A DNA stretch of 64,000 bases from Oikopleura dioica (lineage: Eukaryota > Animalia > Chordata), in contig OU015568.1 of the NCBI GenBank assembly GCA_907165135.1, positions 13,082,001 to 13,146,000 of the forward strand, written 5' to 3'. Every line of letters starts with the position of its first letter. Position 1 is the stretch's first letter. Below the pieces are notes generated by a model. That model was given only the letters and a program-made list of their open reading frames with translations, had not been told where the DNA came from and did no database searches. This document shows, piece after piece, positions 4,656-54,248 of this stretch. The position numbers and the translations under genes were made by a program.

Positions 4656-7600
4656 TTATTCCCAGCTATTCGGAGGACAGGGCATTTTATGAAATTCTTG
4701 CAGGTTGAGCATCGTTTCTCGTAGTTTCACTGCACACAGAACAACTCCAACGTGCCAAATCTCAAAACACATAAAATGATCATTATTTTAAAACTTGATT
4801 TTACCTGATGACTGGCGCCAAAAACATTAAAATGTCCCCGAAAGAATATCTCTGGAAACTTTGTCAAGTAGAAAGAAACCGAAATTATTGCCGTAAGAAG
4901 AAACTCGACAAATGAACTGACAGACGCCCAGTCGTAAGCTTTTCCAAGGCCATATTTTCCGAGAGAATGGAGAAATGGAATGAGTGTGTAAATTGACAAA
5001 ATTGCGAATGAGAATGCACGACAACGGTCGGTTCCGTTGTGGAAATTTTTCTCGTAGTCTTTCTTTTTAGGACTTTTTAGTTTTCTTCCTATTTTTTTGG
5101 TAAAAATCCACTTCACTGTTTACTTTCCTTATTTATCGGTAGGTAAACTTGATGAAAAATGAGCTCTTTTTAGAGCTTATAAATCAGGGAGTATAATACA
5201 GTTTTAGAATCCTCAGAAGCTGGGGATCATTTTGACTATTGACACTTGGGGGTTTTGCTCATGCCCTGAGGGGTTTTAGGCCTTCCAAAGTCCCAAAATT
5301 TGGCCAATCTCGGTTAGAGGCTCATAACTTTTCTTCTCCCCACTTCTGGAGAAAGCCCACTATATGAGCTTGTAGAGGAGGCTCTGACGGTTCAGAATGT
5401 GTATAGAAAACCACCGGACACCCCCCATTCTAGAGCCTCTGGAAGGCCCGGAAGTTGGGGAAGTCAACGGAAAATCAGTATTTTTACGAAAATAGAGTAA
5501 AAGTGCAATATTTTCATCGGACATTGTTAGAAAAACGTTTTCTGACTTTATGACGCACAAAATTTACTCTGGGTTCATTTTAGGTCACGTGGGGTCATAT
5601 TGTGAGAAAAATTGAATTTCGTAAAAACTCACCCCGAAAGGACCCCAGACTAAATTTTGTGCGTCATAAAGTCAGTAAATACGTTTTTCTTACGATTTCC
5701 GATGAAAATGTTGCACTTTTAATCTATTTCCGTAAAAAGTACTGATTTTCCGTTGACTTCTTCAACTTCAGGGCCTTCTAGAGGCTCTAGAATGGGGGGT
5801 GTCCGGTGGTTTTCTATACACATTCTGAACCGTCAGAGCCTTCTCTACAAGCTCATATAGTGGGCTTTCTCCAGAAATGGGGAGAAGAAAAGTTATGAGC
5901 CTGTAACCGAGATTGGCCAAATTTTGGGACTTTAGAAGGCCTTAAACCCTCAGGGCATGAGCAAAACCCCCAAGTGTCTATAGTTAAAATGATCCCCAGC
6001 TTCTGGGGATTCTAAAACTGTATTATACTCCTGATTTATAAGCTCTAAAAAGAGCTCATTTTTCATCAAGTTTACCTATTTATTGGTGATCCCTTCCTGA
6101 AGAGAAAACGCAATCGTGAGCAAAAGAAATATGTAAAAACTCTAAATAATAAATAAGTTTCGTAAATGACTAATTCCGATTACATACGTTCCACAGCGGG
6201 TCGCAGCGGAAAGCAAAGGACACTAGAAATATATTTTTGAGAAAACTGAAAAGTTCTTGTTTCAAGGAACGAGTATGCTCAGGTGAAAGAGCATCCTCGA
6301 TTACGTATGCTGACTCAATCCGGTGGGGGCTGAAAACGGAAATTTTCGAAAAATGGGGTCGAAATCTCGAAAATGGTGGTTCTTATGACGCCAGTTTTGG
6401 GTACTTTTACTTTCCCGTTTTAAAAGGTCAATAGCTCATTTTGTAGCTCAGAGCCTGTGCTTTGCTGCAAGGTATTGATTAGCCGGTCAGTATTAGCCAA
6501 AAAATTTTTCAGGACCTGAGAAGGTTGGGTACTTTTTCGCGATAAGCATGTCCCTTTCTTCTTTGATTTTGGCTAATTTTGTTCTATGTCAGGGTTGGCT
6601 GAATAAAGATTGTTATCATTGCCACTTATTGCCACTCTCTGCCGGAGGACCTCCCGGAGGACCCTTTTCCTGGAAGACCAACTGCTGGAAGACCAATATA
6701 AATAAATGAATAAATAACCTTGCTTGGCCACAAATTGCCACATTTGGACAATTTCGGCAGCTTTATGCCGGAGGACCTCCCGGAGGACCCCTTACTGGAA
6801 GACCAACTGCTGGAAGACCAATATAAATAAATGAATAAATAACCTTGCTTGGCCACAAATTGCCACATTTGGACAATTTCGGCAGCTTTATGCCGGAGGA
6901 CCTCCCGGAGGACCCCTTACTGGAAGACCAACTGCTGGAAGACCAATATAAATAAATGAATAAATAACCTTGCTCGGCCACAAATTGCCACATTTGGACA
7001 ATTTCGGCAGCTTTATGCCGGAGGACCTCCCGGAGGACCCCTTACTGGAAGACCAACTGCTGGAAAACTTGTGGGGAATGAATCTGTCTGGAAGCTCAAG
7101 CACATTAAACTCAGTCAGCCGTAGTTGAGGCCATTCAAGCTCATTAGATTCAGTAAGGCAGGGGCGAAGCCGACCCGAAGGGGAGGCCACGGTCGTTTAT
7201 TTTATTCAATCAGAGTCAGAGCGAAGCCGACCCGAAGGGGAAGCCATGTCCGTTCATTTTATTTAATCAGAGTCAAGGCGAAGCCGACCCGAAGGGGAGC
7301 TCACGTGCGTTCATATTATTCAATCTGAGTCAGGGCGTAAAGGATATAATTTTTTTTAGTCTTTTCTGGTTGGCTTTCGTCTTTTTTAATTTTTGTTCCT
7401 TTTGGAATCCCGAACGTTGAATCTGTTGAAAACGTCCGAGATTATTCGGGAGACTGAAAGATTTGAAAATCTCGAAATATTCGGGATCTTGAAATTTTGA
7501 AAGAGACAACCCTTTCCCTAACTCAGACTTTATCAAATAAACGGGCGTTTATCAAATAAATAATTACTGAATCTAATGAGCTTGAATGGCCTCAACTACG

Positions 7601-8609
7601 GCTGACTGAGTTTAATGTGCTTGAGCTTCCAGACAGATTCATTCCCCACAAGTTTTCCAGCAGTTGGTCTTCCAGTAAGGGGGTCCTCCGGGAGGTCCTC
7701 CGGCAGAGAGTGGCAATAAGTGGCAATGATAACAATCTTTATTCAGCCAACCCTGACATAGAACAAAATTAGCCAAAATCAAAGAAGAAAGGGACATGCT
7801 TATCGCGAAAAAGTACCCAACCTTCTCAGGTCCTGAAAAAATTTTTTGGCTAATACTGACCGGCTAATCAATACCTTGCAGCAAAGCACAGGCTCTGAGC
7901 TACAAAATGAGCTATTGACCTTTTAAAACGGGAAAGTAAAAGTACCCAAAACTGGCGTCATAAGAACCACCATTTTCGAGATTTCGACCCCATTTTTTCG
8001 AAAATTTCCATTTTCAGCCCCCCACCGGATTGAGTCAGCATACGTAATCGAGGATGCTCTTTCACCTGAGCATACTCGTTCCTTGAAACAAGAACTTTTC
8101 AGTTTTCTCAAAAAATATATTTCTAGTGTCCAAAGTGAATGATTGGAATCGTATAAAATACTTGCGAGCACCAAATTCCGATAAAATCCGCTCTTTCGCC
8201 GAAGTGAAAAGTCGGTTTATTTCCGCATTCAGTAGTATGACAGAAAGTCGAGAAAACGACACAAATAATCGAAGAGATGATAAAAAGCGTGACGAGACAG
8301 TTCTCGTAAGTTGAGCTTCCTCTTGGGTTGAAAATTGATTCAATAAGCCAAGGGAGAAAAAAGAATACTGCAAGCCCATGCGTCCAGATATTCATTGTCT
8401 CCGTATGCAGAAAGAACCAAGAAGAAATGAATTCATAAGGCGTTCTTAGCTCTGGCCTGAAACAATCAGTCAACAATTGGCGTCTGGCAATTCGAGTTCC
8501 AAAAGCAAAAAAAAATCAGTAAAATTAATAAACAAAACACTTTGTTTTGGAACCCTAACCCAGCCCTTTTTCTCCAAGGAGAGATTTCTGAATATTTCAG
8601 GAGCTTCAT
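4656..8609 (-). CDS. PAQR copy 2, full length but interrupted by two palindromic elements (possible pseudogene)
   Basis: PAQR motifs ETMNIWTH, STFCHT...ADFIGI and ASHQ/IWH. Removing 6218-8131 plus one AAA restores IPIIHFAFRCDPLWN. The element at 5140-6078 lies in a predicted GA-AG intron. Confidence 0.8.
5140..6078. mobile_element. Palindromic non-autonomous DNA transposon (hAT-type foldback MITE) A
   Basis: Arms ~5140-5576 and ~5641-6078 are near-perfect reverse complements. Ends TAGGTAAAC...GTTTACCTA. Flanks TTTATCGG (5132-5139) and TTTATTGG (6079-6086) form an 8-bp TSD with one mismatch. Confidence 0.9.
6641..7065 (+). repeat. ~125-bp tandem repeat, ~3.4 copies, in the left arm of element B
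   Basis: Unit GCCGGAGGACCTCCCGGAGG... starts at 6641, 6767, 6892 and 7017. Confidence 0.95.
7158..7335 (+). repeat. ~58-bp degenerate tandem repeat, 3 copies, in the spacer of element B
   Basis: GCGAAGCCGACCCGAAGGGG followed by an AT-rich half ending AATCAGAGTCA or a close variant, three times. Confidence 0.85.
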
Positions 8610-8963
8610 TCTCTCTTTGGTCTTTTTGAAGATAAATTCGACTGTTCTTGAATCAATTATTTTCACAAAAATATGAAAACGGAAGCAAAGTAGCATTATA
8701 AATTTTTTTCTTGGACACATGTCACATGTTAGTTACGGACAGTTATCTCGACTACAACATTGATAACAATTTAATTGATTATCAACTGCGTTGTAGACAA
8801 CATAATGCGGCCAAACTTGACCAGGGTGCATAAAACTTGCACAATTTCGATTTCGTCGTGATTGAGCCTTTATTTTGGGTTTTCCTAAGCTCCCCGGCGG
8901 GTTTTCGTGGTGCCTCCTCAACTGACGCATCTGGTGTAGGAATACATGGCTCAGACGAAAAAA

Positions 8964-11883
8964 ATGGTGCCTCTTTTACTTTTCCTTGGCTTTTTTCTTG
9001 GAGTGCGCTCGAAGGAGCTTCCGAATGTGAGAGGATCTTGTAGCGGAGAATTTAGAGAGCCAGAAGGAGAAATCGCCTCGATGAATTTTCCAGCTAATTC
9101 GTATCCTGCGTTGGCCAATTGATAAGGTTTTAACAACGGCGGTATATTTTTGAAGCTAGAAATGTTAAAATCCAAAGTGAGAGTGAATGGACAATAATTG
9201 CGAATTATAAGCAGAAAATCGAAATTACTTTTCTCTTTCTCGAGATAATGGACAGTCCCGGATGTTTCAACGATTACGTGGAGATAATTGATGGAGATCT
9301 AAGTCTTGGTCGCTTCTGTGGAGAAAATCCGGCTCTAGTGCCAATTCTAAGCAGCTCAAACAGACTTGTTTTTAAATTTGTATCAGATGAAAAAAATGAA
9401 GCCAGGGGATTTGCTCTCACGTACAAGTTTCTGTGGGGAGTACCAAATGTGATCAAATGCGACTTCGAGGGACAGGATCTCTGCCGTGGCTGGATACAAG
9501 ACCATTTTGACGAACTCGACTGGAAGATGCGATCAGGGCCGACGTCATCGCCGAATACGGGACCTCAAGAAGGCGTCGATAATTCTAGTTATGCTTATAT
9601 GGAAGCTTCAGCTCCGGCGACATATGGCGACTCAGCGCAACTGATAAGCGCGTTCATGTTCATGGTTCCTGGAGAGCTCTACTGCCTTCGTTTCCATTAT
9701 CACATGTTTGGAAGAGAAATCGGAACATTACAAGTCTACGCGACAGAAAGAGGCTTCAACGTCGGGAAAAGACTGATTTGGAGTCGAACTGGGAATCAGG
9801 GCGATCAGTGGAAAATCGCAACAGTACCAATAACAGGAAGGGTTCAACGCAACGCAAAAGTTTGATCGTTTCTTATAATCGATGCTAATCTTTGCACGAA
9901 CTTTTAAACAGTTGTCATGCCCAATTACAACCAGGTTCTTTTCAAAGCGATCCGAGGAGGGAGTTACGAGGGCGATATCGGCTTAGATAATGTTCATGTT
10001 CGGAAGGGAAGATGCGAAATTGGCGAAAATGTTTCTTTTTGGGAAGAAGAAGAGGAAATTTCAGCAGATGCTTTATCAGAATCAATCCAAACCGAGTCTG
10101 AAGACGACAAAGATCAGAATTCAGAACAGTTAAATGCCTTTTCATTTTCATATTTCAATGCCTAAATTTTAGAGAGGCAGATGATAATAAGTAGGGTAAA
10201 TCACTAATATTTGAGCTCTTTTTTGGGCTTTGTAGAAGAGGCATATAATACCTTTTTATAATCCCCAGAAGCTGAGGATCATTTTGACTATTGATAGTGG
10301 GGGGTCATCTCGTACCCTGAGGGCATTTTGGTACCCCAAAAGTCCCAAAATATGGGTCGCCACTGAAAATGTAACGAATGTAACGAATGTAACGGATGTA
10401 ACGAATGTAACGAATTTACTGAAAATGTAACGAAGACAGAGACATGTTGTTGTTAATCAGCTGATTCTAGAAACTTTTTCCAAAAAGCGATATTCTGGAG
10501 CATCATTTCAAACGACATTAGAACACCTCTAAAAGAGCAAATAAATTAAAAAAAGTGCTCAGTAGTAATTTAAAAAGGTTTATTATCTGATTGAGTTTGT
10601 CTCTTAGAGATAAATCCACTGAAAACGCCCGCTCCGCGGGTGAAATGGTAGGAAACTCAAGGGGTGAAATAAGAAAAACAAAAAATCTCTAGAATTTTAC
10701 TGAAAATGTAACGAGAAAAAGACATGTTTTTGTTGTTTTTGATGTTTTCGTTACATTCGTTACATTCGTTACATTTTCAGTGCCGTCGAAAATATGCCCA
10801 ACTTCGGAAATTCGGATTTTCGAGGCCGTAACTAAGCTTTTTAGACGGAGCTATCTATACCAGCTTGTTGCTCAGGCTCTGACGGTCATTTTGAGGGGTA
10901 GAAAAGTATGTCCCGGGCTACTCTAGAAAGTGGTGGAGGTGGTGCAAAGCTGGGGTCAAGACCAAGAGTCCAGCTAAAATGAACTCTTATATGATTTAAA
11001 TACAGTAACACTTTAAAAAAGCAACTGTAAATACATAATTAATCACCCGAGGTCAACTTGGGGTCACTCGGGGTCATCTGGGGTCAAGTTGGGAGTGTTA
11101 TTTAATTAAAGACGTATTTTTTAAATCTTGACCTTAGATGACCCCGAGTGACCCCAAGTTGACCTCGGGTGACCAATTATGTATTAACAGTTACTTTTTT
11201 AAAGTGTTACTGTATTTAAATCACGTAAGAGTTCATTTTAGCTGTACTTCCGGTCTTGACCCCAGCTTTGCACCACCTCCACCACTTTCTAGAGTAGCCC
11301 GGGACATACTTTTCTACCCCTCAAAATGACCGTCAGAGCCTGAGCTACAAGCTGGTATAGATAGCTCCGTCTAAAAAGCTTAGTTACGGCCTCGAAAATA
11401 GTCAAAATGATCCTCAGCTTCTGGGGATTATAAAAAGGTATTATATGCCTACTCTACTTAGCAAGTAAAAAAGTGGAAAATATTAGTGATTTACCCTAAT
11501 AATAAGAAAGAATTCGAGTGGTTCCTCCCAACAACAACTCAACTCACCACTCAGCCCACTACGCTCGACACGACTGTTTCTTCGAGCTACGAGTACTACA
11601 AGACGTATTCGATTTTGAGAGAGCCAGCAGAAGTTCTTGATTGCGGTGGAACCTCGTATAATTCAACAACTCATTCTTGTTGCGGAGGAAATATTAAAGA
11701 AACGCACCCTTGGGTAAGTGAGAATTCCGATAAAAAATTGAACTAAGAAATTAGCTGAAATGCTGCATCAACGAATTCTACTCGACACAAGTGAAGGGAT
11801 GCTGCGGCAATACAGTTTTCTACCGACGACGAGAAAAATGCTGCTTTGGCTATTTAGTAGACCCTTCAACGAATTGCGGTTAA
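8964..11883 (+). CDS. Secreted CUB + MAM domain protein with acidic/Thr-rich linker and C-terminal di-cysteine (galaxin-like) repeats; one exon interrupted by element C
   Basis: Signal peptide MVPLLLFLGFFLGVRS. CUB domain (CSGEF..IASMNFP..YP; CFNDYVEI..LGRFCG). MAM domain (CDFE..CRGWIQD..DW..TGP..YMEAS..CLRFHYHMFG..IGLDNV). Tail HSCCGG/KCCIN/GCCGN/KCCFG..CG*. Confidence 0.85.
10192..11498. mobile_element. Palindromic hAT-type foldback MITE C (contains a nested insertion)
   Basis: Ends TAGGGTAAATCACTAATA...TATTAGTGATTTACCCTA. Perfect 8-bp TSD ATAATAAG (10184-10191 and 11499-11506). Subterminal blocks shared with elements A and D. Confidence 0.92.
10355..10788. mobile_element. Nested 434-bp TIR element inside MITE C
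   Basis: 8-bp TSD AAAATATG (10347-10354 and 10789-10796). Inverted ends CACTGAAAATGTAACG(AATGTAACG)n, with the outer 6 bp imperfect. Confidence 0.8.
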
Positions 11884-11970
11884 CCTGTTCCCAATTCTGT
11901 TCTCTCATTCATTCGCAAGTAACAATACGGAAAAATAAAATGCTCAAAAATGAAAGTCTCGCCTCTCTAG

Positions 11971-11983
11971 GTCGCCTAGCAAC
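11971..11983. promoter_or_regulatory. RFX X-box upstream of RSPH9
   Basis: GTCGCC-T-AGCAAC matches GTNRCC(N0-3)RGYAAC, about 140 bp before a motile-cilia gene. Confidence 0.65.
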
Positions 11984-12125
11984 GCTGAGTCACATTTGAG
12001 TTGAAAAATCTCAAATTTTGGAAGTTGTTGATTTTCCCATTTTTTCTCTAGAACGCGAGTCCTCATCAGCTGTTATTCTCATTCAAATCAATCAGTTTCA
12101 TTCTAAGTAAGAAAAATAGAGAGAA

Positions 12126-13583
12126 ATGGACGCTGATACGCTACCAGTTGGACTCCAGGAGCTCGCCGGTTTTGGCAGAGGACTTACTCAGGTCAAGGTT
12201 ATTAAATATCTGCTTTGATTGGCGGTCTTTTAGGAAATTTTATTTATAATTTTATAACCTCGTAAAAGTCTCAGAAGTCCTCAATCCACACATCGCTTAT
12301 CATTACTCAATCACAGAACAAATTCAGCGCCATTAGATTCTGGGGTACCATCAGTGGAATCAAAGAGGACTACTTCATCGTATATGGTATAAATAAGGAT
12401 GAACTCAATGGAAGGAAATACATGTACAGGTACCATCAAACTTGGTCTTTCCATCTTTGAGAGCAAATTCAAGCCTTAACTGCATGGACTGGCATTTGCT
12501 CCAGGATCCGTCAGAAGAAACTATGACCAAGACTGACGTTATCCGAGGCCGATTTATTGGAGATCCAAGTTATGAGGTACTAGCAGTTCTCTTTATTATC
12601 TCTAACGATTTTTCAGTATGAACACGTTGACGTCCAGCGAATCGGCGAAGGTGATGACGCTCATGATGAAGAAACTGTTTTCACCATCAAGGTTTGACCA
12701 GCTATTGAAAACAGCCCTATTTCTGTTTTGTAGGAGGAAGATCGACTGTCCGCGATTGTCCACCGAATCACCGCCGAATTCATCGTTCCCCGGGGCGCAC
12801 TCCTCCAAGCTCCCAACGGCGTCGTTTACAAAAACAACGTAAGTTCTAGAGAAATACCTAAAGCCTTGACAAATTATCAAGGGATACTTTGGACACAACG
12901 AATCTGACAGTGCTCATTTGTCGACTTGGTTTCACTTCCGAAAGGACGCCAAGCACGTCGTTCCCAAAGTCACCGACTTTGCTGATGCTGACCCCGCAGT
13001 CGGTAAGTGAAACTCGTTTTGAACATCTCTTAATTTGCCAAAAATGTTAATCCAATGATGAGCTAAACGCGCGGTCGCAGAGTGGCCACAATGTGACATT
13101 GCCGTTTAATAACGGTAATTGTTTAGAGCGATTTTAGAGCCACTAACTCAATCACTAATTCGCTCACTTTTGGAATAATCGCCTTCGCACGCTGCTCAAT
13201 TTTTAATTTTCTCGAACTTGAAATTATCGGCTCATCTGGCCCGATCAGCGGGAGATGATCTGATAGCAAAGTTTGGTCGAAAAGCACGAAACTTGACGGG
13301 TTTATCTTACCCTGAAAAAACAGCGTACTTTAATCGAACCTGTTTAGACTTCTTGGCGACGATCGAAAACGACATTCCAAACGGCATTTGGTCCGTCCAG
13401 AACCAAAATGGCAAGAGCATAATTTTGAAAAACCTTCACTGGATTGGTCTTGTTGCTTACACCGTCCCTGACACTCGGTAAGACTGCGCAAAATTCACTT
13501 ACTTCAGTGTTCTCTTCAGACTTTACGGATGCGCTTACTTCGGAACTGGTGAGCCCAACTACGATCTTCCCTTCATGCTCTGA
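12126..13583 (+). CDS. RSPH9: Radial spoke head protein 9
   Basis: IRFWGTISGIKEDYFIVYG, GRFIGDPSYEYEH, IKEEDRLSAIV..IVPRGA, DIPNGIWSVQ..LKNLHWIG, YFGTGEPNYDLPFML*. Confidence 0.93.
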
Positions 13584-13731
13584 ATTTGAAGAAGAAGAAA
13601 CTGCGAGATTTGAGTAACTTGAGTACCTGTACAAAACCTAAATATATTTTCTTATTATTAAACTTCTCCTTTTACTACTCTCTTTTTTTCAATTTTAATC
13701 ATTTTAGAAGGTATCATCGGAATCGGGAAAA

Positions 13732-16444
13732 ATGCCGAAGAAAGCGCCAAAAATGACTGAAGAGGAGCGACTCCAGTGGGAGCAGGATAAAGCCGCTGCC
13801 GAAGCTGAAGCCGAGGTACTTATTGCTTCAGAATTGCAGTAACGTTCCCAGTAAATCCGTGTCACGTTGAGCAGCAAGCTTCATTCTAATTTGCTCAAGA
13901 ATCCATGGGAGCGAATTTTAAAAATTCAGAGTTTACCAGTTTGGAATTAATCGGAATGTTTCTAGCGCGCGGAAAAGGAAATGATCCTCAATTACATGAA
14001 GGACAAGTTCGCCAGAGAGGAGAAATACTCAAAGCTCAACAATAAAAAACTCATTGGTAAGTCTATTATCTGATATCTATCAGTTTCAGTTTCAAAGAAA
14101 AATAATTTCTTATTTTTTCTAAAATCATTATTCGCGACAGTTTTTCGTGTTGTCTAACTAAGAAAGTCGCCTTTGCATCTGGGCAGAAACACATAAACAA
14201 ACAACAAAAACGAAACGATTAAATATAAATGTTTGACGTGGAACTAGCCTCACCTGACAGCTTCGGAAAAGTAGGGCGACTAATTGAGCCCTTGAAACTG
14301 GTTATTAAAAGTCGTCTTATCGAATGCTCATTGATGAATTTTCTTAAGAAAAATGGAGGAGCATAATGCGCCAGTCAAAGTCGGCAGAATTGAAGAAAGA
14401 GCTGGAGATTCTGTCGCACACTTTTGAGCGAATCATGGACAGGAAAGATGCAGTAATTCAGCAGCTAGCTCGTGATCTGGAAGAATCAGAAGAGCAGAGT
14501 AGAATTGCTACTCGAGCTCATCAAAGGCACGGTTGAAAAGCTCGCGAATGACCCTTGCGCGAATGTTTATAAATCTAGATCCAAATATTTTTAAATTCTT
14601 AAAGCTGCGAATCTCCTCTTAAGCAGAGTTGAAGTGACACTTTTGCCAAGGTTTAATTCCTTTCCTAAGACCGGCCGGATGGCGACTGGATCCTCGGACA
14701 GCTCAGTTTTTCGTTGAGCTTTCTGACGAAACGAGCTTTCGAGGATTTACACAGGCAGTTTTTAATCGTGAAAAAGGAACCTGCAAAAGCTGATTTCAAT
14801 CCAGAACGCGGCTGTCAATGACCAGCAGGATCGCTACAACGAGGAGATCAACATGGAAACGAGCAATTTCGATGAAACGGCGCAGACCTACGTTGACAAG
14901 GTATTTTCCTAATACATTTAACAACGTGCCCGCAAAACGGAATTCGCGGCAATAAGTGTTTGTTTGTAGACGGAGAAGTCGGATCATGACTTCGACACGA
15001 TGATGTGCGCGCTTGAACAAACTCATATTGATAAAACGAGCAAGTTAAAACAAGGTCGGCTTTTGAATTCAAACTTTAATAAAAGTGATGATCTTTTAGA
15101 ATTTCAATCGCTGCGTGATGAAATTAAAAACAACACTCAAGATGAGAAACACGCGCTGCGCATTTCCTTGGAGGCGGCGGTGGAGAAGCTCTTCAAAATG
15201 TTCCAACAAGCACAAAAGGTGAGTTTGATTTCATTCGCCCATGCCAAAACACGTCGGCCGGCTAATGCGACGCGAACGAAATTTAATTTCAGCGACTCGT
15301 ATACGCAAAGCGTTCAATAGAATTCTCAATTTAGGACTATGACAACTCGACCTTGGAGCGACGCAAAGAATTCGAAAAACTCCAAGCCAAAGATGCAAAG
15401 TCCTCAGCGGAGATTGAGCTGCAAATGAACAAACTCGCCAAAATTCAAGAAAATATAAACATCGTCAAGCAAAAAATGGTCAATAACACTAAAGGTAACT
15501 GGGATTAAATATCTTGCTTCTTAGCGACATCATCATAATTCGTTGTATGTTTTGAACATCGTAACAGCAAGGCGTTTTACAGGATTATGAGTAGACGAGC
15601 AACAACAAACGTGTGCTTAACCTTAATAAAGAGAGAGCAATTTGCTTAATTAATAATTATAGACAGATATGTATATCTAAATATTCGATAAGAAATGTAT
15701 TCTTAATTTAGCTGTTTTTATCAATAAAACTGATAAAAACGTGAGCAGGCCAACTGACAATCTCTTTTCAGAATATGAAGAAAAACATGCCGGTCTGAAA
15801 GAAAACAAGGATCATCTGCAAACGCATTTCCGCGTCCTGCGAACCGAAATGAGCAAGCAGCGAAATAAAGAACGGGAAATGCTAACGAAATTAACCCTTG
15901 CATCAGAAGAAGCACTCAAAAGGCAGAAAAGCATTGACGAAAAGGTATTTTTATAAATTTTATTTTTTGTTTGAAGATTATTTTAGGCTTCTAAAATCTT
16001 GAAAATAGGCGAAATGTGCCGAAAACTCGAGACAGAGGAAGAGCAAGTTCTTCCATTTGGCATCGTTCCACCTACTCCTCGTTCTGAAGAGGAGGACAAG
16101 TCGTTAGACGATGGCAAGCCGAACCCCTCACTGAAATCGTCAAAGATTATGAGCAGCTCGAGGGCTTCTGGAGAAGATACAACAAGGTCAAGCTTGATAG
16201 ACTTGCTTTAGAAGCCGAAAAGGTTTCTCTCGAAGAGGAAAACATGACATTGAGAAGCGTGCTCAAGCAGTATCTCGATGGCGTTTCGGTCAACTCAGAG
16301 ACGCTGAAGGAGCCTAATCCGTTGTTCGTCGTGAATCAAAGGACGAATGTCAAATTCGAAGTACCACAAGTCGACCCACGGGTCAAGAAGCCAGTGGTCA
16401 CTGTCGTCGAAGCGGCCCACGCTGTCAAGCACACGCATTCCTGA
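13732..16444 (+). CDS. DRC2: Dynein regulatory complex subunit 2 (CCDC65)
   Basis: MPKKAPKMTEEERL; KWRSIMRQSKSAELKKELEILSHTFERIMDRKDAVI; EMCRKLETEEEQVLPF; LKQYLDGVSVNSETLKEPNPLFVVN. Confidence 0.9.
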
Positions 16445-16893
16445 ATCCAACCTGTATCATAACTTTATATTTATAAATAAAAGATATATTTTTGTAACGC
16501 CTAGCGATGTTCGTCCCGTGTTATCTTTTGGGCGGTTAAATGTGAGAGGTCTAAGATGGCATCGTGGAGAAATATTTTAGAAATAAGAAATGCATGTTTA
16601 CGTTTTATGAAAAGCAGGAACCAATTATCCCTCATGCCAAGAGCAAGTTCCGTAAAAATTACTCCCAATTTGCATAAGCATTTTTCTTCCGTGAAGTAGA
16701 GGCCGTCTTGAGAATTCCTACTGAATATTTCGTTCCACGTCTTTTAGGTTAGCAAAATTTTTAAAACGCAGCAAATTCTTAATCGTTGTAATTGATTTTG
16801 ACTTTTCGAGGGGCGACGAGAGCGCTAGAAATCAGAATAATTATGTGTTCGCCGAAAGATGCTCAATATTATCCTTATCAGAGCGAGGTTGGC

Positions 16894-16907
16894 GTTGTTA
16901 TGGCAAC
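16894..16907. promoter_or_regulatory. X-box-like motif upstream of the DnaJ gene
   Basis: GTTGTTATGGCAAC, about 90 bp before the ATG at 16994. Confidence 0.5.
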
Positions 16908-16993
16908 AGGATGACTAACAATTTCGAGAACGTGGTCTTATTTTCTTTGCACTAGTTTTTATTCCTACAGTTCTTGCCCTTCCTCGACGAAAA

Positions 16994-18325
16994 ATGACCC
17001 ATTACGACACCCTTGGGGTGCGGAAGACAGCCTCCGATCAGGATATAAAGGTCTGAATTTCTTAAAAACCGCTGTTTGATTTTGAAATTAAGAGAGCGTA
17101 CAGGAGACTCGCACTTGAATTTCACCCTGATAAAAACAAGGGTTCTCTCAGGTATTGTCGAATTGTCCAAAAGTATTGTATCAGAATGTAGCGCCGAGCG
17201 AAAATTCAAAGAAATCTCGGAAGCGTACCAAGTACTTTCGGATGAAGGCAGACGGAGGGAATATGATGAGGAGATACGATCAGCACCGTTTGGGCGGGCT
17301 CCTCCGCCAAGGCGAAACTTCTCTTCCCCCGACGAGATGCCTAGTTTCCGCGCGAGACGTAATCCAAACCACCGTTTCACCATGTTAGACCCGATGGACT
17401 TGTTCAAAAGTTTCTTCGGAGCAGATTTCGGCTCTACTTTTTTCAAGAGCGATCCCTTCTTCAGCGATGTTCGAGAGTCTTTTAATCCCCAAGGGTCTAC
17501 TTCACGATTCCCAACTCGGGATCCATTCGATGATCCTTTCTTTCGGGACCCGTTTATGTCTTCATTTCGCGAGGTCGAGAGTCAACTTCAAGGGAGGGTT
17601 GTCAAAACATACCGCCTATATGATGATCACAAATCTCATTCAGTTATAATTCAGAGGAAATCGCGTTTTCACACGAAATAAAAAAATCGAAAAATTAGAC
17701 AACTTTCGTTAGGGGCAAATTGGCCGACAATGTCTAAGGGCCTCGAAAATCCACAGTATCACTCTGATGCGCCAGGTTAGTGAGCTTTAGGTAAAGTGAA
17801 CAGAAGTATGAGTACATTTTTGAGATTAGTGAAAAGTGATACTACTAATAGTCTACAATTGTCGGCGCAAAACTGAGTAACGTCCTTTTCTAGTGAAGCG
17901 TTCGGAGGGAGCTTTAGGATCAATCGGCGGCGGCTTTTCTAGGTAATTTGGCCTCTTAGCTTGAACGCTTCTGATTGCCGGGCTCAGTTTCAGCTCCTCC
18001 TTTGATGACGACTTTTTCAACTCAATCAAAAGACAAACTACTTCCGGAGACAAGGGTGAGCCCCCACGTGGAAGCTTCCAATCCTACTCCTACCACTACT
18101 CGAATATCAACGGCGACAAGAAGGAAGTAAAGGTTTGTTTAACAACACACAGAAACGCTGGACGTTATCTATTCTGTTCCTCTTATGCTAATTTTTCAGG
18201 CGAAAAATATTAATGGAAAGAAATCGTTTCAAAAAATTCATAACGGAGAGGTTGTTGATGAGCGATTTGAGGATCAAGGAGCATCGTCGATTCATGGAAG
18301 ATCACGTGGAAATGCTCTTCGATAA
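16994..18325 (+). CDS. DnaJ/Hsp40 class B protein (DNAJB6/B8/B2-like)
   Basis: J-domain MTHYDTLGV..AYRRLALEFHPDKN..KFKEISEAYQVLSD. F/D/P-rich linker (DPFF repeats). Spliced C-terminal exons (17715-17775, 17894-17942, 17994-18132, 18200-18325) give SFQSYSYHYSNINGDKKEVK. Confidence 0.8.
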
Positions 18326-18555
18326 ATAATCTGATTGAATTTCACTTGAATAAAGGATTTCTCTGTTTTTTATTTTGTTTTAAAAAGTCTCTAAAACATC
18401 GATTTTTCACCTTTGAAAATTTAGAAATTACCGCGCAGATAATCAGATTTCTGTCATCATCGTCGTATCTAAATTCTGAAAAGGGTCTGATTCTCTCGGC
18501 GCCCTGATTGGCCACGGGAAGAAAGACACCTCGGTAGATTGGCTCGAGGTGGAAA

Positions 18556-21500: not shown

Positions 21501-21613
21501 TTTGAGTTTATATAAACATAGTAATTTCAGGCTCCTCTCAGGAGCGAATGAGATTTAATAAGATACCTTGTAATTGAGTCTGAGGTGGACTCTTTCTGGA
21601 AGCTCTCCTCTAA
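18556..21613 (+). CDS. Multi-exon protein with Arg-rich presequence; weak resemblance to mitochondrial phosphatidate cytidylyltransferase Tam41/TAMM41
   Basis: MFRQRLK...RHVRG start; segments RIGVFF, NFSAAIF..LMPEGVTENEFY and NINPIWRKYRSIY recall Tam41. Exon structure uncertain. Confidence 0.35.
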
Positions 21614-21814
21614 ACTTTAGAGTCTAAAGTCTTTATGTTTTCAATTCTAGCTTTTGAAGTTTTGATCCAATTCTGAATCCAATCATTTTTAAAATAATCA
21701 ATTTGAGACTCGAGGATTCTTCGATGCTTTAAAATTTCTGAAAAGACGCTGAGAAATATGTTTTCGTAAATATTTTATATCGCAGCTTGTGACGCGAAAA
21801 TTACGGGTTAATCG

Positions 21815-23526: not shown

Positions 23527-24361
23527 AATATTCTGCATTTTCTGTTGACACAATAAAGGATAGCTTATGTGCATTCCAGGAAATAACTATGCTTACGGAT
23601 CCATAGAGTATGGACCATACTTCAAGAGTCACGGTGAAACTAAAACACCGTTCAAATCGAAACTTTCAATTTCCTGATTCAACTGGAACTCTTCCAAATT
23701 GGAACTTCATATTTGTAAAAACTGTCATTTTTTCATTGTTCTCGGCTTTTAATTGTCGGCAAAACAATGAACATAACCTGCCAATGTAAATTGATTTTTA
23801 TCAGGATCTTTTTATGGTACCGGATATCAAAAATGGTTCGAAGCTTTGACCCTTAATAGTTGAATCCGCTTCTTGGTTTTTGAACGACAAAAGTCGGCGG
23901 AAAAGTCCTAATTATATAGATCATAAAATTTCATTTTTGCCTTTATAGGGAGAAAAAATCGTATTCAAGCAAAGTCGCATTTTGTTCAACCGGAAGTCGA
24001 AAAGATAATCTTCTATGTTATTAAGACAAAAGAGGAAAGAGAGATAATACAGGTTTGACTTATTGGCACTCAACTTTTATCATTTATGAACGAGAAATAT
24101 AAGATTTCATCTAAAATAATTTCAAAAAACAATTCAAACTCTTAGACCTTCACATTCATAAACTTTATTTGTAAATATCGGTTGAGGAACCTGTTGCGTC
24201 ATCTGAAATCCCTTGAGACAACACAGTCATAGGTGCAAGGAACTCCGATTCATCTTTTTTACCCCGTCACCAGTGCATCCCTTCTCGAAGGTTAACATCG
24301 ACGTAACAACAGAGACCAACCTCAAAGTTTCCGGACATCAGCCAGTCTAAACCTGCAGAAA

Positions 24362-40100: not shown

Positions 40101-42997
40101 ATAAGTCGTTTACCGGAGAATGAAAATTTAATTCGCGAGTTGAACAACGATTTGTTTTAGAACTTTTTTGTGCTGAATGCATTATTGAATCGCAAATGCG
40201 CAAAATATTTATAAAGGCGCGCGAAATGTACTTCCACGAATTATAGACAATCAAATATCTAACGCCGCTACTCTGATCTCAGTCTAGTCATTTTAAAAAT
40301 AGATGATCATCAGGTCGATGGGTTCGCTTTTTATGTCAACACTAGTTGCTTATTCTTGTAAATTTGGAGCTCTCATTTTATTTTAAGAAATTGTTCGAAT
40401 TTGGCTTTATTAATTAACCAGAAACGAGTAAAATAATTCCGTCAACGAGCGTAGTTTGGCGGTCAAATTTTCTGCCAAATTTAGAATGAATGTTCAAAAA
40501 GTCAAGGATTTCCAATAATCTTAACAAGAGAACAATAGAAAAGAATCAAGCGGAGAAGGTGGCGCAGACGGAATCGTGAAATCGTGAAAACTCTCGATTT
40601 CAGCTCGTGCGCGCCCTCGCGCTCCCGCTGAGCCCGACGCGCCGCGCTGAACCGCTTGGTCTTTTTCGACAAAGAGATTTTTGAAAAAAGAGACCCTGCA
40701 TGGGCGACTGAAAAATTTTGGGTAATGCACTAAAAAGGTGAGTTCAATTACTGTAAAATATCTCAGAAAAAAAAACTATAATTATGAAAAAGATATTCAA
40801 GAGTTATAATTTAAAATTTATCTTCTACTATTTTTTCCTAAGTTAATGTTTTTTTAATATATTATTTATCTTGATAGCGTTTGCTGAACTTTCATTCTGT
40901 AATTTTTAATTTATCAAACTCAGTGGTATTATTGTGCTCCTAGTTGGAAAGTGTTGTTTATATGACTTTATAAATGGTTTCTTTTGCGGTTATTATTGAC
41001 CTTATCTAGTGTCGTCAGTCGAATAAAATATTCAAAAATGCTTCTCCGAAGTTCAAAATTTGATTTTCTCCGAAACTGATTCAACCAACCAACTTAATGC
41101 ATTGAGACTTTCTCAAAGGCACTCAAAAATACTGAAACAAATTTAAATTGTATTGAGCAAAGCCTCGAAACTTTAAACAACTTCACTTTTTCTACCCCTT
41201 TTTTAACCCTTTGAACACAAGTTTGTGGATGCAAAATTATTGTAGAAACACGCTTTATAATACAAAACCCTTCACAAGTACAAACATCAAATATACAGCG
41301 CTATTGACTTTTCCCGAAAAGTGAAAAAGCGGATTAGTAGTCCGCTAATGGCCTCTCGGAAATGAGCTCTTCGCCGTTTTAGATGAACAGCTTCTTACAG
41401 GCGTTTTTAAGCCGGATTGATAAATCGCCGCGCGAGTAATGGAACGTCTGGATTAAGCGCAAAAACGTCAAATTAAGGACTCGAACTGTTATCACGGCTA
41501 AGAGCTCATCAAGGACGGATTACGACACGTTTTTTTTCGCCACCTCTAATGGACAGTCCAAACATTAGAAATCCCTTTTCCCTTTTTTCTCTGAAAAAAT
41601 ACCAAAAAATTTTATTAAAATTTTTCTTTCATGAAAGTAATTTCAAATGAAAAATTTGCTCCTACTTTCTTGATTCAATCAAATGTACTGTATTACTGTA
41701 TTAGTGGTACAGTAATCAAATTTACCAATTCAAAGTTTAATGCTAACTCGCAGATCGTTCTCATGAAAACCTGTTTTGAAAACAGAAACATTATGCACCG
41801 AGGAGATTTATGTCAAAAAAGTACTGCACGTGGTAGTTCAAAAAAATAAATCGCGCCTCTACAAGTTTTGTAGACCAAGTATTATCATTTTTGCAAAACG
41901 CTCGTTTTCAATTTTCAATTCTTCCTCCAATTTTCGGCCTTTGCTTTTTCGCTCCATGAAAACGTCACCTTGGGTAATCAAATTTGTTGCCACGAAATTT
42001 GGATTACAAATAGTTTATGAATTTCTTTTCTTTCTCCAACCTTTTTCTACAAATTCCACATTTTTCACTTCACCGAACGGGTTTTTGTTTAGGGATTCTA
42101 AAGGGGGATAAGGGATTGCACAGCTTTCAAGATAGTACTATCGAAATGAAGGCACAGAAGGTTTATACTTAAAGTATTTACTTTAAAATGCTCGCACCTA
42201 TCAGGCTGGCAAATATTTTTGATAAAAATAGATTCAGTTTTTTAGAAAATGATTTTTTTACTTCGAAGATTTATTTTCCTTCTCCCTTGTTTGATTCTTT
42301 ATTATTGGTAATTCAAATCAAAGTATCTTTCTTTTTTTTCTATTTCAAAATAGAATTCTGGGTCGAAAACGTGGTCACGTGGTTCTGACAGCTTATGGAG
42401 TGCAAAAGATAAAAGTGTCGAGCGGAAATGAGCAGAACGCTAATGACTTTTATCTGAAAACAGGCGACGATTTGGGAGATTGAAATTTAAATTCGAGCAG
42501 CGACCTTGTTGATTATCGACGAAATGCGAAAGTCGTAATTTCTCTCAAAATGTCAAAAACGACCATTTCATTTCCGGGCTTGGTTTTTACAAATTCTTTG
42601 GATCAACATTTTTCTGCTTGTTTTTAATTGATGCTTCTCTCCTAAGAATTTTCCTGGTATTTTATTAGATCTACGGTCAATCAAATTTAGAAGCGTAATC
42701 TTAAGGGTGTCAAAGGCTGATCAGAAAAGCTCGCGAAATTAACTTCTTTGTTTTAGAAGTTTCAAACCTTATATTAAATTTTAGCTGCGATTTGTGATTG
42801 AACGAACCTGAGCCGATCATCAATCCCGACACGATTCTCAACGGAATTTCTTAGGAACTCTGCGACCCCCTGCAGATCGTTGGAATTTCGATAAATTATA
42901 AATTTTAAATTTAAAATAGTAACTAATTTCACGAGAAATTGCGCGGGAAAGCGAAAGAGCGCACGAATTTTTTTCTAATTGAGATAGAAATTTAAAA

Positions 42998-43977
42998 ATG
43001 ACGATAAAATTGAAGAAATTCTTCAAATGGCTGCGGAAAGGGGGCGCTAAAGAGCAAGAAACAGCTGAAATCGCGAAGATTGATAATTTGTCGAACAGCG
43101 AAGAACTGGTCCTCTGTTCGCTTCCAGTGCGCGCCCAGTTCGCGTTTAACCCGACGCTGTCGAGAGCGCCGAGCTTGGCGCAGTGCGGGCCATTGCGGGA
43201 CACAGCTGTGCGCAAAAGGGTTATGCGTCACACGTCCGACGTCTCCCACCGCCACCGCACTGCACGTCACTTTGATTTTATTAAAAGTATGTAGCGCGTT
43301 TTAGAAATATTACAAAAAAAAACAACTCACGAGCATTTCCCCTAAATCTCGTTTCAAGCGCGCCTTGACGAGCTGCACGAGTTAGCAGAGCTCGACCGCC
43401 ATCCAATCGTGTCACCTCGCACGCGTCCTGGACGAACAGGCCTTCTTAAATTTGCGAAGACAGAACACGTTTCTGGCGGAAGCAATAGAAGCACCTCATT
43501 GATGGATCTAAGGATGCCACCGGTGCCCAGTTCGCCGCTTATGCCACTTTGGAAGCGCAGTAATCCAAGTTTGAGTGGCGATGCAGATGAATCCGGCTTC
43601 TCGGAAACGTCTGAGACAGATTCAAACATTTCAGGACCAGGTCAAATATGCCAAACTGGAAACTGGTTTCTTATAGCCCCTAGTTCTCGAGTTTTGGTCA
43701 ATTTTTTTGGCTTGTGTTGACTTGAAAATCAGACTCTTCCAAATGCTTGAGTTCAGCAAGTAGCTCAAAGGAAGACTCTTGTTTGAAAGAAAAGGTAAAA
43801 AAGGTAGATAGTTTGGACGACTTGGCGTTCTTCGCCGCGGGTGGAACGCCTTTTACGCGTCGCCGCGACGGCCCCATCAGGAGAGATCGCAAAACCGTTC
43901 TGTTGAACAGGTCCTTGAGCTGCGCTAATGCAGGTAAGCGACTTCATCGCGTTGGAAAATTGTTAACAACGTTCTAG
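42998..43977 (+). CDS. Uncharacterised Ser/Arg-rich, probably disordered protein
   Basis: Three consecutive GC-rich ORFs (42998, 43409, 43747) separated by intron-like gaps. No recognisable domain. Confidence 0.5.
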
Positions 43978-44260
43978 TGCACCGAAGCCAGCTGAATATA
44001 TGTTGGTCGGGAATCGTCGTTTGAAGAGACGATCTCGCGTTTTCTATTTCTGTAAATACATGTTTGACTTGACCACTTCCACAAATCTGCTGATTCTTTT
44101 GTACAAAGGTGCCAGTTATGATTATTTGAGTCATCGTAAAGACCGACAGAGGAATATTTAATTGGACAGACTATATTTGCATGTCATTGAGAATAATGGT
44201 GGTGCCCACGGGCGAATTCATTTAGTAAATTTCATTAAATTTTTTTTTGGTTGAAGAAAG

Positions 44261-46052
44261 ATGAATCCAGCTGCTGTTGCTCATCTGAGTATGTTTGTTT
44301 TGAAAGAGAAAGTTACTTTAAACATGGCGTAGGTCGGGCGAGTCGAGTCAGTAAAGTGGTGAAAGCTGCTCTTGGCAAGAATCTGCTCAATGATGAAAGT
44401 CCAGTTTTGGATCTTTATGATTTAGAAGGCCTTCGAGGAAGATTTCGGGAGGTCCAAGGTAAAATTAAGGGTATTTCCTTTTTATTGAAAACAAGGAGGA
44501 TATCGTCTTTGTTGACTTTTGCATTGAAATCATTTCCCAGAAGCGTTGCCATCATGGAATCACGCATTTGCGATCAAGACGAACCCGATTCGAGGGGTAA
44601 TGTTAGAGGCGAAAAAGTGCGGCCTTGGAGCGGAAGCAGCTTCAATCGGTGAACTTGAGCACGCGTTGCAGCTTGGCTTCGATCGATCAAAGATCGTCTA
44701 CGATTCTCCTGTTAAAACGAAAGCCCATCTCAAACACGCGCTCAACGCAGGAGTTGTCATTAACCTCGACAATCTGGAAGAAGTTGAGAAAGTGAATGAA
44801 ATTTTACCCGACTTAAATGTCGATGTGACCGGTAAAATTGGCATGCGAGTGAATCCTAACGTCGGAGCTGGAAAAATTGCCATGTCTTCGACTGCTGGGA
44901 AATCGTCGAAGTTTGGACTGCCGATGACCGGGGAATTCGAAGAAGAAGTGATCAAGATCATCCTCGACAACTCTTGGATTCAAGGTCTTCATCAGCATAT
45001 CGGAAGCCAGGGTATCTCGCTCGACCAGCTTACTCTTGGAGTGGAACGACTTGTCAAATTAGGAATCGGTTTTTATCATTTTACCCTGATTTTACCTTGT
45101 CTCAATGGTAAAATCGTTTGATAGCAAGGAAGATAAACGACCTCGCTGGAAAGAAGCAAATCAAATACATCGATGTCGGTGGAGGAATCCCAACAGACTA
45201 TGAATCTGACGATGAAAAAGTTGCATTCGCAGAATATGCAAAGTTGATTACAGATCGAGTGCCCAATCTTGCAGAATTTTCGTTTCACTCAGAGTTTGGC
45301 CGCTCTTTAGTGACGAAATACGCTTTTTCTGTTTCAAAAGTTGAGACTGTCAAAACATGGGGTGATAGAATTACTGTTTTGACACATTTCGGATCAAATC
45401 AGTTCTTGAGAGAGGTCTATCTTCCCGATACGTGGTTTCACCGGATGTCTGTATTGGATAAGGTACCTGGCTAGATACAGTTTCAACGCTTAGCTTTAAA
45501 GTTTTTCGTTTAAATTGTGGCATCAATTTTGAACCCAAGCTTCAGCCTTTTTAGAACGGAGATCCAAAGACAGGCGACTTAATCGAGCAAGACGTCGGTG
45601 GCCCCCTTTGTTTCCAAGGTTTCTTTATAACTTTTCCTATCATTAGATAGCCAGCAATATCGGTATATAATTAAATATATTAAAGGGGACTATCTTGCTA
45701 AAGCACGAGCGTTGCCTGAAATCAAGCCTGGCGATTACATCGTGATGCATGATATCGGTGGCTATACATATGCGCTCTACTCGCGCTTCAATTCTATCCA
45801 GGTAGGTTCATTTGATATCAAAAATAAGCTGAGCGTAAAGCAACAACATATCTGCTCCTTTGATATTCAGAATATCATATTCTGTAATTATATTATCATC
45901 AAATAGTCTTACGATGTCAATTTAAAATGTTACTTAAGGCCCCCGCTGTTTATGGTTACGATGAGTCGCATAACTTCTACGAATACAAATCTCGAGAAAG
46001 TTTGGCGGAAACCCTCTCTTTCTGGGGCCATCGAGAGCCGAAAAATATCTAA
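44261..46052 (+). CDS. Diaminopimelate decarboxylase-like, fold-type III (Orn/DAP/Arg class II) PLP enzyme
   Basis: PLP lysine HAFAIKTNP; EAASIGE; DSPVKT; SKFG; HIGSQ; IDVGGG; EFGRSL; GPLCFQGD; DIGGY..YSRFNS. Six introns predicted. Confidence 0.9.
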
Positions 46053-46268
46053 AAAGCAATCTGTTGGGGCGTTAATTGCCCCCTTCTGTTCTGCTTTCTT
46101 GTTGTACCACTCGTAATGTACGATTGGGGTCGGCATGGTTACTCCATTGTTTGAACTGCTCCTAATAAACACAGAATATCTACATATGTCCGAGTTCCGC
46201 CTCAGTAAATGTCATTCCTAGAGGTTTGATTAGCTCCAAGGAGAGAGGTTTTCGTAATAGAGAGGCTT

Positions 46269-49378
<3,110 letters not shown>

Positions 49379-49939
49379 GATCAAAAGAACGCCTCAACTT
49401 GTTCAAAATGTTCACCGGATATGGGCGAGAAATGCAATTTTACCAAACAGGAAATCATTCGAAATTCTTATAAATAATAAGCCTAATTGAACTAAGAAAA
49501 AAATCGTAATAAAATGGATTAGTAAAAATTGAAATTGTAATTTTGAATGAAATTAAAAGCACAACAACAACTCTGCCTGCTCTCTAGATTTTGTACAACC
49601 CTTTTTTACACAAATAAACAACACAATTCAAAAACTGTTCATTCCTTCAGAGATTCTTTCTCGTTCAGGAACCCAGAATTCGAGTGGTTCGATCTGTTTT
49701 CCGGGCAGCGCGATTGGCTGAGCCTGGAAAGCAATTTTTTCGCTTGGTTTCCGACTTTTTATCGAGAGAAAAAGCGGTTCTGCGTGAATAAAGAGAATTC
49801 TGTTTGGAAATTTTGCAATTCTTTCTAGAATCCTGTTTAATTTTCAGGGGATGATTCATTTAAACGTTAATAAGTGGTATTTGAAGAATCCTCGACTGTG
49901 CTTTTTTACGATTCATATAGGAAAATTGTATTTTTAGAG

Positions 49940-53098
<3,159 letters not shown>

Positions 53099-53289
53099 CT
53101 CCAGAGCCATGCTTTTCACACATTCCTGACACTCACTTACTCCTAGGCCCTTTTCTACTACTGCGGCGTAATAACCTGGACTTTGACTGTTCAGAAAATT
53201 GGTTTTGTGGTAATTTTCAATCGTTGTTACGAAGCCAGCGTGAATCCAAACACGCGCGGTCTTTATTCCAACTTTTGTATAATCATGTC

Positions 53290-54248
53290 TAGGGGAAATC
53301 ACTAATAATTTGACTTTTTGTAGGGCTTAGTAGGGTGGGCATATAATACAGTTTTAGAAAGCCCAGAAGCTGGGGAACATTTTGACTATTGACACTTGGG
53401 GGTGATCTCGTACCCTGAGGGCATTTAGGTACCTCCAAAGTCCCAAAATCTGGCCAATTCCGGAAATGGGAAATTTTGAGGCAATAACTCGACCTTTCAG
53501 AAGGTGCCGTCTATCCTAGATTGTAGACCAGGCTCTGACGGTCATTTTGAGATATAGAAAAGTACTGAGACCCTGGGGTTCCTGAGGAGCTAGAGGCTCT
53601 TGAAGTCGGGGAACTCGAGAAAAATTCCGTACTTTTCTACAAAAAGTACACCATTTGTGTCACAAATACCTCCCAAAGACTTTTTATCTATGTTTCTTCA
53701 CTAAAAAATGTTTAAGAAATCATTTGGGGTCATCCGAGGTCAGATCGGGTCACTCATGACAGTTTTCTAAATTTCTTATAATTTCTGACCTAGAGTGACC
53801 TCAGATGACCCCAAATGATTTCTTGAACATTTTTTCATGAAGAAACATAGATAAAAAGTCCTTGGGACGCATTTGTGACACAAATGGTGTACTTTTTGTA
53901 AAAAAGTACTCAATTTTTGTCGAGTTCCCCGACTTCAAGAGCCTCTAGCTCCTCAGGAACCCCAGGGTCTCAGTACTTTTCTATATCTCAAAATGACCGT
54001 CAGAGCCTGGGCTACAATCTAGGATAGACGGTACCTTCTGAAAGGTCGAGTTATTGCCTCAAAATTTCCCATTTCCGGAATTGGCCAGATTTTGGGACTT
54101 TGGAGGTACCTAAATGCCCTCAGGGTACGAGATCACCCCCAAGTGTCAATAGTCAAAATGTTCCCCAGCTTCTGGGCTTTCTAAAACTGTATTATACGCT
54201 CACCCTACTAAGCCCTACAAAAAGTCAAATTATTAGTGATTTCCCCTA
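53290..54248. mobile_element. Palindromic hAT-type foldback MITE D
   Basis: Ends TAGGGGAAATCACTAATA...TATTAGTGATTTCCCCTA. 8-bp TSD ATCATGTC (53282-53289 and 54249-54256). Arms ~460 bp, loop ~30 bp. Confidence 0.93.

Follow-up and report, generated by a model that had tools for sequence, protein, structure and literature searches.

Why do three long palindromes in one stretch of the Oikopleura dioica genome all carry, next to their centres, direct repeats of the half-site RGKTCA, and for whose benefit are these repeats kept? The question is raised by the elements A, C and D, which lie in a 64,000-bp window (contig OU015568.1, positions 13,082,001 to 13,146,000) and which an initial annotation had described as a mobile platform that spreads nuclear-receptor sites through the genome. 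We found that A, C and D belong to a real, recently mobile, non-coding and non-autonomous family of hAT-type miniature transposable elements with inverted repeats (MITEs). From the pattern of substitutions, the arrays seem to be kept for the spread of the transposon itself. We give an even chance to the fuller reading in which they form a phased module, selected in the transposon lineages and read by a host DNA-binding protein that several transposon families exploit.

A palindromic hAT-type family

Each of the three elements is a palindrome over its whole length, starts with TAGG, ends with CCTA and is flanked by a target site duplication (TSD) of 8 bp. They had been described in these terms and with these positions (Table 1), and the description was borne out except for one mismatch in the TSD of A. 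The palindrome of D has arms of 459 nt, 96% complementary, with 53 nt between them; that of C is made of inner arms of 273 nt (95%) and outer arms of 77 nt, and that of A of a chain of five collinear arm blocks which are 89-100% complementary. Folded as single-stranded DNA, D gave one hairpin of -535 kcal/mol (z = -82; mean of the shuffles, -104 kcal/mol). The YARNG-type terminus reads TAGGG in C and D, and TAGGT, differing at the last position, in A. The TSDs are perfect for C (ataataag, 10184-10191 and 11499-11506) and for D (atcatgtc, 53282-53289 and 54249-54256), and agree at seven of eight positions for A (tttatcgg versus tttattgg, 5132-5139 and 6079-6086). No open reading frame (ORF) of 70 aa or more was found inside A, C or D. 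The size of about 0.95 kb attributed to the family holds for A and D and not for C, which reaches 1307 bp because an unrelated element of 428 bp with terminal inverted repeats (TIRs) is nested in its left arm. The inverted ends of this nested element, 37 nt long (10358-10394 and 10749-10785) and 97% complementary, are made of AATGTAACG repeats. The sequence blocks that the three elements had been said to share were present in them and never in shuffled sequence, and the most conserved of these, the subterminal block CAGAAGCTG.GGA.CATTTTGACTATTGA, is a likely cis site for the transposase.

The searched genome comprised 64,281,565 bases in 19 pieces, the two largest of 17.09 and 16.16 Mb. The arm of D gave at least 40 scored matches with identities of 73-97%, and the arm of A retrieved a separate set; eleven further copies of A were 92-96% identical to it. 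The block CAGAAGCTG.GGA.CATTTTGACTATTGA matched 198 times (93 forward, 105 reverse) versus 0 in the control, and these 198 arms therefore correspond to about 100 elements. The proposed density of one element per 20 kb is correct locally, and it does not extend to the genome, where roughly 100 elements are spread over 64 Mb. Approximately 74 arms have two in-phase half-sites placed at the canonical distance from the block (an estimate after collapsing overlaps; 102 raw matches). There were 38 full-length copies, of 884-969 bp.

The TSDs were surveyed in 50 extracted genomic copies with TAGG/CCTA ends. A perfect 8-bp duplication was present in 41 of them and one with a single mismatch in 2; five of the remaining seven belonged to two clusters, with copies adjacent to or nested in one another and with reverse-complementary flanks, which suggests rearrangement. 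The clusters, at C4:1142832-1145175 (L013, L019, L021) and C4:4336508-4338423 (L042), consist of neighbouring or nested palindromic copies, and in both the flanking 8-mers are mutually reverse complement (CTAATAAG / CTTATTAG and ATAATCTT / AAGATTAT). This suggests that they arose by inversion through recombination between copies. The target consensus was nTnATnAn: positions 4-5 were invariably AT, and of 43 sites 25 had T at position 2 and 25 had A at position 7. Insertion sites of hAT elements have the consensus nTnnnnAn, and those of the present family fit it. The idea of a mobile hAT-type family is thus supported by the 41 perfect TSDs among 50 copies, by the target consensus and by the termini. 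For D itself, one DNA contig joins position 53279 to position 54247 and skips 967 bases, which correspond to D plus one copy of its TSD. In one DNA run the depth of this empty-site contig was 203, that of the contigs of the filled allele approximately 155-256 and that of the flanks 298-337. With the empty-site contig standing beside filled-allele contigs, D appears to be an insertion polymorphism.

The elements are non-coding, have TIRs and TSDs, and occur in many copies of uniform size, which are the features of MITEs; their 0.94-0.96 kb is slightly over the usual range for such elements (less than about 800 bp, the definition being loose). A foldback-type element was rejected, the arms being unique sequence apart from the three-unit array, and not tandem subrepeats. 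One D-type copy (L033:955-1151, from C5:1565426 onward) has its right arm split by about 4.9 kb of inserted sequence, which starts with TGTAGTGG, and the outer part of the arm reappears near C5:1570402. Eight short copies were considered as possible array-less amplifying lineages; each has its own deletion breakpoints, and they were uninformative either way. A metagenome scan for relatives outside the genome, made with the family block, returned 13 single matches, none with an in-phase half-site pair, and these were read as chance. The only arm similarity among them, 27 nt in L103, overlapped the search pattern itself.

A hAT transposase gene with the same termini, which the initial annotation proposed to look for, was not found among the hits of PF05699 (the hAT dimerisation domain), their gene and the array pairs. 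The search with PF05699 gave nine hits in the genome. A hAT-transposase-like gene exists in seven near-identical spliced copies with open frames (C1:636-739 kb, C4:379-394 kb and C5:13.846 Mb; L081-L087), some of them in tandem, 4.87 kb apart, beside tandem repeats of 30 bp and 60 bp. It was rejected as the mobiliser, no similarity to the MITE ends being present within 1.5 kb, and the protein search found no further copies of it near array pairs. An inverted pair of arrays 3.8 kb apart on C2, considered as an autonomous element, was likewise discarded, as no tip of the hAT type is present where the canonical distance would place it.

Phased half-sites and the level of selection

The arrays were found at the coordinates first assigned to them, with the mirroring announced for C and D. 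In A good half-sites are present in one arm only, the mirror array of the other being degraded to GGGTCC and GGGTGA. The innermost site of D falls outside the arm symmetry, yet it is still a half-site and is kept on both sides. All the in-phase RGKTCA pairs of the window lie inside A, C and D, and single RGKTCA half-sites occur there at the chance level (67 and 56 per strand versus about 62 expected). Genome-wide, the triple array RGGTCA-n4-RGGTCA-n4-RGGTCA was found 198 times versus 0 for the reversed pattern used as control, with a calculated chance expectation of approximately 0.015. The logo of 215 in-phase units from distinct contexts was T (78%) G (78%) R GGTCA N N, so the repeated unit is an 8-mer, TGRGGTCA, which recurs every 10 bp, or helical turn, and leaves only two positions of the spacer free. 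The claim that the spacers vary while the half-sites are kept is accordingly right for the half-sites, which are kept far better, and has to be amended for the two bases before each of them (T 78%, G 78%).

Direct repeats of RGKTCA with a 4-bp spacing (DR4) are the textbook arrangement of nuclear-receptor half-sites, and partners of the thyroid-receptor type prefer such half-sites with a 5' TG extension. The arrays consist of such repeats, with a 5-bp spacing occasionally, in C and in copy L045. A nuclear receptor of the RXR-partner type would be the best motif match for a candidate reader. The tolerated half-site variants could not serve as a fingerprint of the receptor, since the internal slots vary too little, 60 of 65 being AGGTCA.

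The conservation of the half-sites was evaluated by aligning 25 full copies of the D type. The number of non-majority bases per site was 0.67 in the half-sites, 2.87 in the rest of the element, 4.25 in the spacers and 3.94 in the loop; the comparison of half-sites with spacers across the family, on which the first interpretation depended, came out in favour of the half-sites. On a tree built from the columns other than the half-site columns, with changes counted by parsimony, the half-sites showed 0.14 changes per site versus 0.68 elsewhere on internal branches (P = 2e-6) and 0.31 versus 0.86 on terminal branches (P = 3e-5). Permutation with random sets of 6-mers gave 0.001 for internal and terminal branches both. 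The half-sites change three to five times less than the rest on this tree, and the spacers and the loop have no such reduction. They persist in copies of 73-79% identity in which the neighbouring sequence cannot be aligned, and they are common to the cores of A, C and D, which are otherwise unalignable.

These arrays could be functionless, a short tandem repeat that slippage created in the middle of the palindrome, or that transposons passed on when they recombined with one another. The number of sites per arm, from 1 to 5 between subfamilies, and the occasional 5-bp spacing would agree with this, as would the fact that transposons in this genome often have repeat modules in common. Such an origin would leave unexplained the three- to fivefold deficit of substitutions relative to flanks, spacers and loop over lineages that are 25% diverged, the retention of the third site outside the arm symmetry and with a different spacer, and the recurrence of the same 8-mer in unrelated elements. 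We regard it as highly improbable.

The level at which selection acts can be read from the two arms of each copy. In the D-type copies the arms of one copy differ by 2.7%, versus a divergence of about 11.5% from the family consensus, so most of the divergence is concerted, both arms changing together. This likeness, about four times that of the copies to the family consensus, implies arm-to-arm conversion or repeated regeneration. In all D-type copies the homogenised zone of the arm ends at the second half-site. The half-sites have no long-term change common to both arms. Mismatches limited to one arm were present at 11 of 299 half-site positions (3.7%) versus 292 of 10,880 elsewhere (2.7%; Fisher p = 0.28). 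The half-sites are thus mutated at the ordinary rate and the mutations are not passed on, which indicates selection on the propagating lineage and not on each inserted copy.

This last result bears directly on the role first proposed for the elements, a platform spreading functional nuclear-receptor response elements, with the inserted copies kept by the host as regulatory sites. The motif fits an RGKTCA direct repeat with 4-bp spacing, receptor genes are present (55 exon-level matches, and six reported NR1I genes, PMC4245547), and the half-sites are depleted in changes on the terminal branches too. There are also precedents in the DR2/DR4 sites of Alu and in SINE B1 with NR5A2 (PMC1785376, PMC5159539, PMC11577042). 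Against this role, the recent single-arm mutations show no depletion in the half-sites. In addition, the insertion of D appears polymorphic, copies with unique internal deletions persist without their centre, and A, C and D have no consistent position relative to genes. We therefore hold this role to be distinctly improbable.

As to these positions, element A and another palindrome of 1.9 kb sit between two PAQR/HlyIII exons on the minus strand (8476-8123 and 5116-4727), C comes just after an exon for a MAM domain in a CUB/MAM gene, probably inside that gene, and D lies approximately 600 bp 3' of the last coding match of MCM6. No position relative to genes is common to the three. The 1.9-kb palindrome (6234-8114), which adjoins A, is an unrelated fourth one with internal tandem repeats, the units of which contain GGAGGACC motifs. 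A and C start at most about 25 bp from the ends of coding ORFs (the PAQR exon, 5116-5140, and the MAM exon, 10165-10192), and each nearly fills an inter-exon gap.

The same array in unrelated repeats

A search with the exact array variant gave 13 occurrences in the genome, made of six inverted pairs with a separation of approximately 10-12.8 kb and one solo array. The pairs correspond to a 13.6-kb transposon present in six copies, which is young, its copies being about 99% alike. Its TSDs are of 3 bp (AGA, TCA, ACT, CAT, TTT). Four to five phased TGAGGTCA sites are found approximately 385-435 bp from each of its tips, and they point inward as in the MITEs. The two kinds of element resemble each other in their long inverted ends, in the array at the inner edge, in its orientation and in a similar distance to the tip. 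BLAST of the 13.6-kb transposon against the MITE arms revealed no similarity besides the array, and the MITEs do not belong to its family, having an 8-bp TSD and TAGG termini versus 3 bp and GGTAGAAG. The 13.6-kb transposon cannot be the mobiliser of the MITEs. The array is, by its occurrence in both, a transposon module shared between families, and it is probably read by a host factor.

AGGTCA arrays were also seen in other settings. Five separate arrays with unique linkers stand within approximately 550 bp at L100:1370-1925 (C4:8396829-8397384), where neither tRNA nor clear coding sequence was found. A single-copy host enhancer was rejected for this cluster, which has a second copy on C3 at 67% identity and the end of which (L100:1882-2056) is a MITE-like repeat with at least 12 copies. 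At L059 (1-484 and 870-915), a perfect 56-bp tandem array (a hairpin satellite), GGTCCTCCG repeats with CACGTG and a four-site AGGTCA array adjoin, and the whole looks like one composite repeat.

Transposons of the hAT type contain subterminal repeats that bind their transposase, such as AAACGG in Ac/Ds and GTGGC in Hermes, which are needed in cis and are found no farther than about 250 bp from the tips. These are likewise short repeated motifs inside hAT ends. The arrays may similarly bind the transposase of their own family or another transposon-encoded DNA-binding protein, as would be expected from the lineage-level conservation typical of a cis-acting transposition signal and from their location inside inverted ends, pointing inward, in the MITEs and in the 13.6-kb element. 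The repeats of Ac/Ds and Hermes, however, are specific to one element and its enzyme, whereas the O. dioica array, about 430 bp from the tips, also occurs in a non-hAT element. TSDs of 8 versus 3 bp indicate different enzymes, and an array common to elements with such different termini and TSDs is unlikely to be a site for the hAT transposase alone and fits a host factor. Moreover, blocks nearer the ends are equally conserved and are family-specific, and an array-poor subfamily still has several copies. A binding site of this kind is an unlikely explanation, if less so than retention by the host.

Nearly the whole of each MITE is made up of its two inverted ends (about 450 bp), and we propose that the MITEs are internal-deletion derivatives of a long-TIR hAT element. 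A hAT transposase would move them in trans, creating the 8-bp TSDs at nTnATnAn, and the family-specific subterminal blocks would be likelier sites for this enzyme than the array. The approximately three TGRGGTCA sites, one helical turn apart at the inner edge of each inverted end, would constitute an accessory module. It would mutate at the normal rate, and the lineages losing it would leave few descendants. The module may recruit a sequence-specific DNA-binding protein of the host, which for instance would ensure that the element stays accessible or active in germline cells. The genome contains candidates for such a reader, the 55 matches to receptor DNA-binding domains being grouped by position into approximately 37 loci.

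Several observations weigh against this proposal or against its supports. The mismatches between arms rise near the centre (6-7% at 401-440, with small counts), and a local depletion of the half-sites relative to their neighbours, of about two-fold, is therefore possible. The terminal branches are long and mix change in the source lineage with change after insertion. The A-like subfamily has one half-site per arm and still has several copies, which indicates that the array is helpful rather than essential and not strictly needed for movement. With no autonomous hAT element with these termini found, the array may, for the MITE family alone, be the binding site of a further transposase. The shorter side of the empty-site contig of D measures only 29 nt, and a polyA RNA run had two poor reads on D and 0 on its flanks, and is hence uninformative.

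Table 1. Positions of the elements, arrays and conserved blocks (window coordinates, except for the 13.6-kb transposon)
Feature	Position	Strand	Description
Element A	5140-6078		939-bp whole-element palindrome, hAT-type MITE, A subfamily
Element C	10192-11498		1307-bp palindromic MITE, C subfamily
Element D	53290-54248		959-bp palindromic MITE, D subfamily
TIR element nested in C left arm	10358-10785		428 bp, unrelated to C
Most conserved subterminal block, CAGAAGCTG.GGA.CATTTTGACTATTGA	53364-53392	+	also 5214-5242, 10266-10294, 54146-54174 (-)
Conserved block, GGCTCTGACGGT	53531-53542	+	also 5380, 5829 (-), 10875, 11329 (-), 53996 (-)
A array	5572-5597	+	GGTTCA-n4-AGGTCA-n4-GGGTCA
C left array	11050-11086	+	four half-sites, spacings 5, 4, 4 bp
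C right array	11129-11165	-	mirror of C left array
D left array	53727-53752	+	GGGTCA-tccg-AGGTCA-gatc-GGGTCA
D loop	53753-53785		AT-rich, asymmetric, poorly conserved
D right array	53786-53811	-	innermost site: spacer ctct not gatc, A replacing G
13.6-kb transposon	e.g. C1:9120147-9133763 (L092/L093)		6 copies; ~500-bp inverted ends, 89% identity, GGTAGAAG termini

Repeats as carriers of receptor sites

That repeats spread receptor sites is already known. The short interspersed elements (SINEs) of the Alu family in primates, with their DR2/DR4 sites, likewise are mobile repeats that multiply RGKTCA direct repeats (PMC1785376, PMC5159539). Alu is a retrotransposed SINE for which receptor binding is reported, whereas the present elements, known from sequence, are DNA transposons that move by cut and paste and carry phased triple arrays, one the mirror of the other, on their two arms; the conservation of these arrays points to a benefit for the element. 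SINE B1 of the mouse similarly has a receptor motif embedded in a repeat family, which links this repeat to NR5A2, an early-embryo transcription factor, at zygotic genome activation (PMC11577042, PMC10709309). It offers a model for a transposon that keeps such sites, although element class and organism differ from those of the O. dioica MITEs. Closer in type are the MITE-derived liver enhancers of Xenopus tropicalis, which include a hAT MITE and are likewise non-autonomous DNA transposons enriched for transcription-factor sites (PMC12676858). The Xenopus elements have open chromatin and links to tissue-specific genes, whereas the O. dioica case is made from DNA sequence and argues against constraint on individual copies. 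Full-text searches on the transposons, MITEs and nuclear receptors of Oikopleura turned up nothing on repeats of this animal that carry receptor sites. New in this family are the type of carrier, the signature of selection at the level of the lineage, and the module shared at the inner TIR edge by transposons of two superfamilies.

Transposons with transcription-factor sites are well known in mammals, where they are mostly retroelements and where one usually asks how the host benefits. The present cut-and-paste family has a clean sequence signature of sites that seem to be kept for its own propagation, and the strong homogenisation of the arms within each copy merits study. If one host factor does read the arrays, they would offer a tractable example of transposons that rely on a DNA-binding protein of their host, with a testable ligand-receptor angle on transposon activity. 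O. dioica has polymorphic insertions and combines a genome of 64 Mb with a short life cycle, so that one could measure directly what each insertion does to its neighbouring genes. We advance tentatively, as a possibility with the odds against it, that several unrelated transposon families of this species depend on one host factor reading AGGTCA, most plausibly a nuclear receptor, and that the approximately 100-200 dispersed and partly polymorphic arrays are also a receptor cistrome delivered by transposons. If true, such a cistrome would stand ready-made in one of the most compact animal genomes.

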